Shown here: piece after piece, positions 29,001-32,000 of the stretch
Layout of the letters: each line of letters starts with the position of its first letter
Position numbering within the stretch: position 1 is the first letter of the stretch
Assembly: GCA_977016875.1 (NCBI GenBank)
Contig: CDRNST010000090.1
Coordinates: 992,001-1,056,000 of the forward strand
Length of the DNA stretch: 64,000 nucleotides
Direction of reading: 5' to 3'
Source of the DNA: Pavona decussata
Taxonomy: Eukaryota
Position numbers and translations under genes: made by a program
Notes under the pieces: generated by a model
Database searches by the model: none
The model's input: only the letters and a program-made list of their open reading frames with translations
What the model was told of the DNA's origin: nothing

Positions 29001-32000
29001 AACACATTAGCTAGGCTTTCATCCACTGACATAAGTATGAGACATAAACCGTGTCCCCTCAGGAGTGGCATGCAGAGTACTGCTCAGTAGTTCCTGTTTG
29101 ATTTGTCACACTTTAGAATTTCATTTATACAATCACTAAAAGTAAGATCTACCGTACCTCGTAACGCATAACAAATAGTACCGCAGGAAAAAACCGTTTT
29201 CAACAGCTTTTGTTTGGTTTGTTACACTTTGGTATTTTTAATCCCAGACTCGAAAGTTTATGGGAACCGAGGTTGGCTGCGTCAACCGGAGAGACAAAGT
29301 TAACAATGCGCGGCTTGTTCGGCGTCGGTCATTTGTTTAAGAAGAAAGGAAAAATCGATTCGATTCTCCTCAATATGCGTCTTTTATATTTTCTATTACT
29401 TCTTTTAAGAAAGGTTACTTACATCATCGCCATCTTTAAGTGGGCATGAATAATAAAATTTCCCCACCCGCTGGGCTCTAGTTTAAGCGGAAAAAAGGAA
29501 CTTCGCCATACGCCCATCACACGAGCACTTGGCACTGCTGACGAAGTTGTGTGGCCTCATGCCTTAGTATAGAAATCAGCTGCAAAGTGTTTCCCCTGAA
29601 TGAAAACAAAAGCATCAGTGCTGTGAAGAGCTCCTCAAGGATTACCATGCTTACGCCCCCTCCTCCACCCCTCCCCTTTCAAATTAACACCTTCTGATCA
29701 ACGATCAAGAGGCTGAGAACCAAGGGGCATTTAATATTGGAAAGGATTGCTCACTCCGACAATTCAGCTTTATGTCACAGAATTAATGTCTGAGCGCTTT
29801 TTTGTTCAACGTCGGTTATTTGAATTTGTAACTAACAGTCGCTTTATATAGGACAATTAAGACTTAAGCCTTTACACAAAAAAACAGGATAAAATCTTAT
29901 GCCACACCCTTCACCTTATATAGCTCGTCAGGTTATCCTTTGTTTGAAAACAAGACATGGGCGGCTTAGTTCACCAAAATAGACAGTGAAAAATATATAT
30001 TTTTACCCTTTGTTTACGGAAGTCTCTTCATGAAGACATTTCCGATGAATTACAACCTTTTGAAAGCGGAAAATTAGTCGGAAGACCAGAGTGTTGTCAT
30101 TAGTAGATTTACGTTGTTTCAGCATCCGCTGTCGTAAAAAAGAAACAAATTCCGTTCGTTTTTGTGGATAAGCTTTAATCGGTAAGAACAAAGGTCATCG
30201 TAATGGAAACGCAATGCAGTTTGTTGTTGGTTATTTGAATCGTGAACGGCCACCGAGGTGTCATTAAAATTCATGCTTAAAAACGATTTGAGGCATAGCG
30301 CATATTGAAGAATATGGGCCACGGAAAGGTCACTGTCTTGCCCAGAATAGCGACCAATATAAACAAACTGTGCGTTTTCCAGCTGCAGGCCACCTTACAG
30401 CTTCTAATCACTCACGCGAGTTTGAGATTAAGAGAAACAGGAACTCAGGATTTTTACCAAAGTGAATAAATTAGTAAACGTTTCCATAAAATAAATTATG
30501 TTGAAAATTAGAAACTATGACAAACTCGAATCGGTTGATACCGCATCAGTTCAACCGACGAACCTCTCCCAAAAATGGCGATTAAAATGCATTATAGTTA
30601 CAGACGCATAACCGAGTCCCATGTCAAGGTTCGTTGCGGCTTGGTTTCAACAGAACCGTAATCACCTTTTCACTAACTCCCGATCCCTGTGGACAAATAA
30701 ATCCTTTGTTTATCTTGTTTGCGGCCCATGTTTAAACACTACACACAAATGCAGCATTGAAACTGCATTTTTTTATTTTCTATTTTTTTTTTTCCATTTA
30801 GGTCAGATCAAATGCTTGAGGATATTATTTTTAAGTTGGTACCAGGACTGCAAGAAAGTAAGCAATTATATTTGTTTCATTTAACTTTCAATTTCCATCT
30901 GTTGTTTTGATATTAAGTTGAGAAAGTGCCCATAAAGCATCATTTAGATGGTTAATTCTCTTAATAAAGTGCTTTACTTTCGCCTCAGTTGTCAATATAT
31001 AGTTGCCTTGGTTTCCATTTCAAGTTCCGGGTGTTCAGTTCACATCATTCCACGATGTTCAAAATATCTGACAAGGCGAAACTCACTTGTCTTGAACATT
31101 GTTTTTAAATTGAAGTAAATTCCCCTGACGAGAGTATTTTGCGTTGTTGTTTGGCACACGTTCGGCTTTTGTTCTTCCGCTTCCCTGGCAACACAAAGTT
31201 CAAGGAACTGTTAAGTTTCACTTTCCCTTTCAGCGCTAACTACCTTCCAAACGAAACCATATTGGTACAGGGCCAATCATAACAGCTATTATGCTCTTAA
31301 CAATAGCGTATTGATGACTACAAAAATAGCAACAACTTCCCTTGACCACCAGGTGGATTGCGTGACTCTCTTTGTTTTGTTGAGTCATAGCCAGCCCACT
31401 TAGTTTCTATGTTTACTGGTGACTACACTACTACCTTCGCTTTCCAAACTGATTCGCGGAAAAACCAGTCCAGTCAGTGCTTTAAAAGCCTTTGTTAAAT
31501 TCCCACTTTAGCTATTCTAGGAAAGAAACCTGTTTTTGTCGTTCTTTCGAGGAATTGAAATACACAGGTTAGAATCATCGCAATGCGCGTTTCTTGGTGA
31601 TATTACTCAGTAGCTTTCTATTATCGAAAGCGTCGTGCTCTGAAATCAAACAAGAGTTAATTATCCGTCTACCTTTTCAAGACTGCAATTTTATAGCACT
31701 TTTAAATTTGCATATGCTAACGAGCAAGCATGAACTTGCCTTTGTGGTTGATCAGTTGAAAACACCGGAAGACTTTACTCGGGGAAACCCCTCAAGAGAT
31801 GATTCGCTCCGATTGGCTAATATAAATAGGCTGAAAAAAACTTCCTTGTTTTCTCGAGATGTGATTCCATTTGAACCTTTATATTTATAACAAGCAGGAC
31901 TTCTCCGTTGTTGTCATTTTGAACTGGATCGCTAAGAAACGCTTTAAATCTAGATCTTAAATGGCGAAGCATCAAAGTACGGAATTCGTCATCGCGCAGA

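Follow-up and report, generated by a model that had tools for sequence, protein, structure and literature searches.

A conserved promoter with IRF-, STAT- and NF-kB-type sites ahead of a nested Regnase-family RNase gene in stony corals

A standing question is how animals without interferon turn on their antiviral genes, and the cnidarian evidence so far consists of transcriptomics and motif enrichment in one anemone, together with single IRF or STAT knock-downs that gave no phenotype. A gene for a Regnase-family RNase in the stony coral Pavona decussata raises this question at one compact locus. It lies in the window, by which we mean the whole 64,000-nucleotide stretch analysed here (contig C90, positions 992001-1056000, of a 602-Mb assembly; G+C content about 0.40, no N). 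The original prediction saw ahead of this gene an "enhanceosome-like" promoter of the interferon-stimulated gene (ISG) kind, made up of three interferon-stimulated response elements (ISREs), an AP-1 site and an NF-kB (kB) site. We find that the region is, with high confidence, a selectively constrained TATA promoter with an upstream enhancer, both serving the nested RNase gene; to judge from the kinds of sites that have been kept, this promoter and enhancer together may well give it NF-kB/IRF/STAT-type inducibility. The factor names that we attach to sites are presumed throughout from textbook consensus sequences, and not from a motif matrix library.

The RNase gene is a single intronless open reading frame (ORF) of 767 aa (31961-34264, plus strand, from the ORF listing). 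Its product is an NYN RNase of the Regnase/ZC3H12 type, which also carries an N4BP1-type KH domain, a CCCH finger and two UBA domains, one of them at the C terminus (RNase_Zc3h12a in Pfam, E = 1.4e-63; ZC3H12A in PDB, E = 1.6e-79). The whole gene is contained in the intron (30858-35772) of a PCGF-like (RING/RAWUL Polycomb) host gene, whose preceding exon occupies 30803-30857 on the plus strand with its donor GT at 30858. The GT..AG joint 30857->35773 is present in four of four RNA runs, which come from four studies, and since this host splice joint occurs in those same runs, their contigs are RNA. Contigs cover the RNase gene in all four, starting at 31740, 31807 and 31916 (three runs) or at 31486 (one run) and ending at 34459, 34461, 34469 and 34518; this contig-end zone (34459-34518, plus strand) marks the 3' end or poly(A) region, and contigs are nearly absent from the intron beyond it (34531-35318). 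Because these data are contigs, they define a start zone of 31740-31916 only, with one contig reaching 31486, and expression level is not readable from them. RNA contigs running from 31486-31916 to 34459-34518 bear out the placing of the RNase promoter in this stretch.

Orthologues were collected by protein search (96% down to 45% identity), and the genomic loci of ten were fetched. These ten scleractinian loci include Orbicella faveolata (L008), Oculina patagonica (L009) and an Acropora-cluster locus (L010), the protein of which groups with Acropora proteins when clustered at 90% identity or more; L012, the closest homologue in Nematostella, was compared alongside them. Site-retention counts out of nine refer to the nine non-trivial orthologues. 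The host exon sits 1.08-1.6 kb 5' of the RNase ATG in the coral orthologues, and in Orbicella and Oculina the host gene encodes RING and RAWUL domains. As a neutral benchmark we used identity to the window at 4-fold degenerate sites, which is 0.53-0.61 for L003-L005, 0.47 for L010, 0.42 for Orbicella and Oculina and 0.32 for L011. Such sites are near saturation in the distant comparisons, and unconstrained DNA should therefore be unalignable at these distances.

In MAFFT alignments of the regions upstream of the gene, short blocks stand invariant among diverged, indel-rich spacers. Conservation was measured as the share of 10-mers from the window that are found again, allowing up to one mismatch, in at least five of seven distant orthologues. 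This share is 10.3% in 31200-31530 and 15.2% in 31700-31860, and it falls to 0.6% in the spacer 31530-31700, 2.1% at the start of the intron (30858-31200) and 0.2% in the intron after the RNase gene; reversed-target controls gave 0.0-1.2%. Conservation is confined to two modules, a distal one (31200-31555) and a proximal one (31700-31855), and the rest is at background.

The proximal module holds a cassette of three sites whose spacing is fixed across all nine non-trivial orthologues. The first is the kB-type site GGGGAAACCCC (31781-31791), an 11-mer of the p50-homodimer kind present in nine of nine. The pattern GG[AG][AG]A[AG][AG]CCC occurs in every one of these orthologues 39-43 nt before the TATA box and has no match in the background flanks, and the window's site fits the GGGRNWYYCC consensus close to the probable transcription start. 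The second is an inverted CCAAT box (GATTGG, NF-Y-type; 31811-31816, minus strand), also in nine of nine and 9-12 nt before the third, the TATA box TATAAATA (31821-31828, plus strand), which reads TATAAATA or TATTAATA in all ten orthologues. In the window the kB site stands 29 nt before TATAAATA, with ATTGG (31812-31816) between the two. Transcription would start near 31850, because the TATA box plus about 30 nt falls there, and the likely start region is marked by the invariant block AACTTCCTTGTTTT (31839-31852, plus strand; nine of nine, with AACTTCCTGG in Nematostella). Ahead of the cassette lie an octamer ATTTGCAT of POU/Oct type (31706-31713, plus strand; seven of nine, zero matches in 51 kb of background flanks), an almost invariant block GAACTTGCC to which no factor is assigned (31732-31740, plus strand), and an ETS-type site CACCGGAAGACTT (31763-31775, plus strand), the GGAAG core of which is kept in nine of nine, 15-24 nt before the kB site.

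The distal module carries the sites that resemble targets of IRF and STAT factors. Its first block, AAGGAACTG...AGTTTCACTTTCCCTTTCAGCGCT (31202-31237, minus strand), holds a three-half-site ISRE/IRF-type element (31216-31231) adjoining an ETS-like GGAA; the element TTTCNNTTTC(NNTTTC) is found at the same place in L006, L002, L004, L005, L008 and L009 and in degenerate form in L003 (six to seven of nine), and against background a match within 70 nt on either side would be expected with a probability of 0.014. A second IRF-like site, CTTCGCTTTCC (GGAAAGCGAAG; 31435-31445, minus strand), is kept in nine of nine as CTTC(A/G)CTTTCC, reads CTTCACTTTCC in most orthologues, and always precedes by 17-20 nt (counted between starts) the first of three sites that resemble the gamma-activated sequence (GAS). 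This GAS-like site 1, TTCGCGGAA (31453-31461; TTCNNNGAA, STAT-type), keeps its arms in seven of nine with centres GCG, ACG, CCG, GTG and ATA, and GAS-like site 2, TTCTAGGAA (31515-31523), is present as TTCNNNGAA in nine of nine with centres TAG, CAG, TCG, TAA, CAA, TTG and GCA. GAS-like site 3, TTCGAGGAA (31546-31554), is kept in the majority of orthologues: a scripted search located it in the window and in L001, L003 and L006, and in the form TTCGTCGAA in L008, while the alignment adds L002 and L009 and shows N4-spaced variants for L004 and L005. Retention of the TTC/GAA arms around variable 3-nt centres is the pattern expected of a STAT-type palindrome.

Between and beside these sites lie footprints of other kinds: a MEF2-like AAAAATAG and an ETS-like AACTTCCC (31322-31341, plus strand; eight and seven of nine, respectively), a bZIP-like TGGATTGCGTGAC of C/EBP/ATF type (31354-31366, plus strand; nine of nine, by a pattern defined after alignment), a forkhead-like TTCTATGTTTACTGGTGAC with a TGTTTAC core (31405-31423, plus strand; nine of nine, with CTATGTTTA at 31407) and a block AAATTCCC that is possibly a Rel half-site (31497-31504, plus strand; seven of nine). 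The second IRF-like site, the three STAT/GAS-like sites, two ETS-like GGAA sites, the octamer, and the forkhead and bZIP sites were absent from the first reading of this DNA.

What that reading did list is present to within 2 nt (its positions 30884, 31010 and 31214 include two flanking bases), and conservation sorts the listed matches sharply. The minus strand has cores of the ISRE pattern GAAANNGAAA at 30886-30895, 31012-31021 and 31216-31225, the last of them overlapped by a further core at 31222-31231, and AGTTTCACTTTCCCTTTC at 31214-31231 is a three-half-site ISRE and the sole window match to the extended RNGAAANNGAAACT. This last element is the conserved one just described. Core no. 1 (TTTCAATTTC, 30886-30895) is confined to the window, L001, L006 and L002, core no. 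2 (TTTCCATTTC, 31012-31021) to the window, L001 and L006, and their surroundings (30858-31200) show no more than background conservation, which leaves one constrained match among the three ISREs. The IRF-like AAACGAAACC (31249-31258, plus strand), proposed as a further promoter element, is likewise kept in close relatives only and drops out. The AP-1 site TGAGTCA (31381-31387) survives in part: it is perfect in three of nine (L006, L002 and L003 only), and its half-site GTCAT is found in six of nine, with the variants GTGTCAT, GCGTCAT and AAGTCAT. The expectation that the motifs would be kept in orthologous promoters holds for the ISRE at 31214, the kB site, the inverted CCAAT box and the TATA box.

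Motif density tells less. The 64-kb window holds 19 ISRE cores, eight AP-1 sites and 14 GGGRNWYYCC matches. At least three non-overlapping ISRE cores within 350 nt were found in three of 300 dinucleotide shuffles (1%), and since cores are twice as numerous in the real window as after shuffling (18 vs 9.1), the true excess of the cluster is smaller than this suggests. The composite of at least three ISREs with AP-1 and kB sites within 1 kb was seen in none of 200 shuffles. The excess of ISREs by density is thus modest, and motif density taken alone is suggestive; it is cross-species conservation, not density, that makes the cluster more than chance. Searches for the same arrangement elsewhere were negative: the kB-CCAAT-TATA cassette was not found at any other place in the 602-Mb genome at the stringency used and is unique to this locus, and the distal module, considered as a possible dispersed repeat and rejected as one, is single-copy in the genome. 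No Rfam family or repeat was found in 30000-36000.

A promoter of this make-up would need factors to read it. In the genome at least five IRF DNA-binding-domain loci exceed the Pfam cut-off and two loci carry a Rel-homology domain (RHD_DNA_bind, on C486 and C313), in agreement with the earlier statement that cnidarians possess IRF and NF-kB. Published work supplies an immune context. Among genes induced by polyinosinic-polycytidylic acid (poly(I:C)) in Nematostella, TATA boxes are over-represented, as are motifs for STAT, IRF, NF-kB and ETS (PMC8476169). The induced genes include the ZC3H12-type NVE4498 (log2 fold change 5.1) and NVE1859 (3.5). ZC3H12-type genes also mark an activated immune-cell cluster, and the Stylophora family member XP_022787764 rises after treatment with 2'3'-cGAMP (log2 fold change 1.49, adjusted P 2.7e-13; PMC13319465 and its Data S22). 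Activated cells up-regulate homologues of IRF2, FOS, ELF1, STAT5A and ELK1, as published, and these families are the ones whose sites are conserved at the coral promoter. The locus also suggests a scleractinian-wide set of immune response genes with a Regnase-family RNase among its members. By sequence, the promoter has what an ISG-type promoter has, an ISRE within about 1 kb of the start and GAS palindromes, with selection on both. The factors that drive the mammalian genes are NF-kB and Elk-1/SRF for Regnase-1 (PMC2829564) and IRF3/7 for Regnase-3 (PMC6605757). Our search of the literature on ZC3H12 in corals or ISREs in cnidarians found nothing specific.

The reading that we prefer joins these observations in one scheme. 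The proximal module runs in the order octamer, GAACTTGCC, ETS, 11-bp kB, inverted CCAAT, TATA and AACTTCCTTGTTTT, the last lying around the putative start near 31850. Basal transcription would be set by NF-Y and TBP with the help of octamer- and ETS-type factors, and after immune or stress signalling NF-kB at the proximal module, and IRF and STAT with AP-1/bZIP factors at the distal one, would raise it. The RNase gene would then respond in an ISG-like, NF-kB-type manner in an animal that has no interferon. As a whole we rate this scheme somewhat more likely than not, but its parts do not stand equally firm. That the region is the RNase gene's constrained promoter and enhancer we hold to be very likely; NF-kB-, IRF- and STAT-dependent inducibility is the function that we consider most plausible for it from its sites, in a balance that could still tip either way; and the proposition that a single IRF/STAT/NF-kB-type unit has been held at the RNase gene from Acropora to Orbicella and Oculina, and is truly read by those coral factors, is put forward tentatively. 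If this last were true, ISRE/GAS/kB logic of the interferon-stimulated-gene type would operate without interferon.

Several results weigh against this scheme. The factor identities at the sites are predicted from consensus resemblance. The binomial P values for site retention count each related species as an independent case. Moreover, the a priori consensus patterns were ISRE, GAS, kB, AP-1, CCAAT and TATA only, and several others were defined after the alignment had been viewed. The composite of the second IRF-like site with GAS (YTTCRSTTTCY-N5-9-TTCNNNGAA) matches 36 times genome-wide vs 26 in the backwards control, which is no enrichment. The STAT_bind and STAT_alpha Pfam models gave no match in a search made exon by exon, a procedure that limits claims of absence, and a single STAT is reported in Nematostella (PMC8713801). 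RNase contigs occur in all four RNA runs, and expression may therefore be largely constitutive. XP_022787764, the Stylophora gene induced by cGAMP, is a paralogue; the orthologue in Stylophora is XP_022785917 and that in Acropora millepora XP_029200069. The cGAMP response of Nematostella was unchanged by single IRF or STAT knock-downs (PMC8713801). Finally, the promoter of the Nematostella homologue (L012) contains no ISRE and no kB site, only a cyclic AMP response element (CRE) and the AACTTCCTGG block, and the module is therefore not shown to predate the Scleractinia. The ISG-like label that the original prediction gave this gene thus keeps its conserved IRF- and kB-type sites and the immune induction of homologues in Nematostella and Stylophora, and is weakened by the paralogy of the induced Stylophora gene.

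Of the competing explanations, the one that survives best accepts the constrained promoter and enhancer and holds that other factors read it, or that its use is constitutive, tissue-specific or developmental, so that the likeness to ISRE, GAS and kB sites would be one of name only and the gene would not respond to immune stimuli. We regard this as unlikely, though it is a serious contender. It draws on the octamer, forkhead, MEF2-like, NF-Y and ETS footprints, which are of non-immune types, on the contig coverage of the RNase gene in four of four runs, on the Nematostella knock-downs and on the lack of genome-wide enrichment of the IRF-like/GAS composite; moreover, short conserved blocks nearly always look like some factor's consensus. 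It has to contend, however, with six separate footprints (two IRF-like, three GAS-like and one kB) that fit three cooperating immune families, with a kB site that is a full 11-mer, and with GAS sites whose arms are conserved and whose centres are free. Strong induction of homologues by poly(I:C) and cGAMP, and enrichment of the same motif families along with TATA boxes in cnidarian antiviral genes, also argue for immune inducibility.

A second explanation leaves the proximal cassette to the RNase gene and assigns the distal module (31200-31555) to the PCGF-like host gene, as an intronic enhancer, a silencer or a splicing or processing element. The module does lie 350-700 nt 3' of the host donor in an intron arrangement kept in all orthologues examined, and unspliced RNA contigs extend from the host exon across it. 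Its distance to the RNase TATA box is nevertheless roughly constant (the forkhead block stands at -370 to -427 relative to that box in all orthologues), whereas the host exon stands at a more variable distance. Neither the intron adjoining the donor (30858-31200) nor that after the RNase gene is conserved, and short blocks with variable spacers and no Rfam match are typical of factor sites rather than of RNA elements; we consider a host-gene function for the module improbable. The last explanation, that the motif cluster is a functionless chance product of an AT-rich intron, we find scarcely credible: the modest ISRE density in a window with twice the shuffled number of cores, and the non-conservation of two of three ISREs and of AAACGAAACC, speak for it, but the main ISRE, the kB, CCAAT and TATA sites and the other blocks hold a fixed order and spacing despite near-saturated 4-fold sites, so that conservation contradicts it for the main sites and it stands only for the matches at 30886, 31012 and 31249.

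Some further observations concern the genes at and around this locus. Nesting in the PCGF-like intron and an intronless RNase are common to all scleractinian loci examined (L001-L011), whereas the Nematostella homologue has introns and is not nested, its neighbours being a DUF4807 gene and a kynureninase-like gene; going by gene structure, this difference would agree with a retrocopy that arose at the base of the stony corals. The start block AACTTCCTTGTTTT recurs as AACTTCCTGGTTTC about 120 nt before the ATG of the Nematostella homologue, where the remaining promoter differs, and from this recurrence it may be a conserved start-site or 5'-untranslated-region element of the RNase gene family. 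In Oculina (L009:4001-4154, CM126636.1) the deposited gene model begins 153 nt 5' of the ATG that is conserved in all other orthologues; its kB site (L009:3984) and TATA box (L009:4024) thus fall at and inside the annotated start of the coding sequence, and the start codon has therefore probably been mis-called. Some Acropora gene models are similarly extended (777-778 aa vs 724 aa).

In three of the four runs unspliced contigs run from inside the host exon (30829) over the donor (30857/30858) up to 31788. It may be that part of the host transcripts continue into the intron and terminate at the poly(A) region of the nested gene, an intronic polyadenylation that would yield a truncated PCGF isoform. 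Two more ZC3H12-type NYN RNase loci are present in the Pavona genome (G000:C172:810839-813624, plus strand, and G000:C36:1905164-1905703, minus strand), giving three paralogues in total, and the cGAMP-induced Stylophora gene probably corresponds to the C172 or the C36 locus rather than to the window gene. Of the five IRF genes in this genome, the one at G000:C213:345882-346196 (minus strand) has in the 1.1 kb upstream of it (L020) a kB-like GGGGGACTCCCC and, 14 nt away, a GAS-like TTCTCGGAA, and before its ATG there are also three ISRE cores, three further GAS-like matches and an AP-1 match.

The promoter would belong to an already known, immune-type inducible class, and its value is that of a testable system for ISG-like regulation without interferon. 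It is compact (about 650 bp), and its individual IRF-, STAT- and NF-kB-type sites are marked by deep conservation, which opens them to mutation and testing one by one. The locus shows, too, a nested gene retaining a promoter of its own within an intron of a Polycomb gene in all corals examined.

Set beside known systems, the coral promoter shares features with four of them. Like vertebrate ISG promoters of the GBP or IRF1 type it combines a three-half-site GAAANNGAAA-type element, TTCNNNGAA palindromes and a TATA box, all within about 650 nt of the start; it differs from them in that these elements stand among forkhead, bZIP and octamer sites and in an animal from which interferon is absent (PMC8713801). 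The resemblance to the poly(I:C)-responsive promoters of Nematostella (Lewandowska et al. 2021, PMC8476169) lies in the combination of a TATA box with STAT, IRF, NF-kB and ETS motifs and in the induction there of ZC3H12-type genes. The two bodies of evidence differ in nature: the Nematostella result is a statistical enrichment in one anemone, obtained with vertebrate matrices, whereas the coral result concerns one locus and site-by-site conservation across the Scleractinia.

The comparison that does not hold up in full is the one drawn by the word "enhanceosome-like". In the interferon-beta enhanceosome the sites are packed contiguously within roughly 55 bp. The coral promoter shares with it the three implied factor families, AP-1/ATF, IRF and NF-kB, but has about 150 nt between the ISRE and the AP-1 site, about 400 nt between the AP-1 and kB sites and a whole span of about 575 nt. 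Its sites are thus strewn over about 600 nt, and fixed spacing is limited to the pair formed by the second IRF-like site and GAS-like site 1 and to the kB/CCAAT/TATA cassette; the term is best dropped.

A further likeness is to the mammalian genes for the homologous RNases, ZC3H12A and Zc3h12c. The coral promoter has a kB-type site, as might be compared with Regnase-1, and IRF-type sites, as might be compared with Regnase-3. Human ZC3H12A is bound by Elk-1 at -76 to +60 (PMC2829564), and the coral gene likewise has an ETS-type site near its start; in the human gene, however, Elk-1/ETS has its partner SRF at a CArG box, whereas in the coral promoter the ETS site is conserved and the CArG box is absent (CC(A/T)6GG has no match within 30579-35306). 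A further difference from mammalian ZC3H12A is that the coral kB-type site lies within the core promoter, beside the CCAAT and TATA boxes. Mammalian paralogues divide kB and IRF control between them, whereas one coral promoter carries both kinds of site; if the coral sites are indeed read by these factors, and although the nearest Nematostella homologue has neither the ISRE nor the kB site, the mammalian split, with NF-kB acting on Regnase-1 and IRF on Regnase-3, might partition a combined input of the kind that the coral gene would have.

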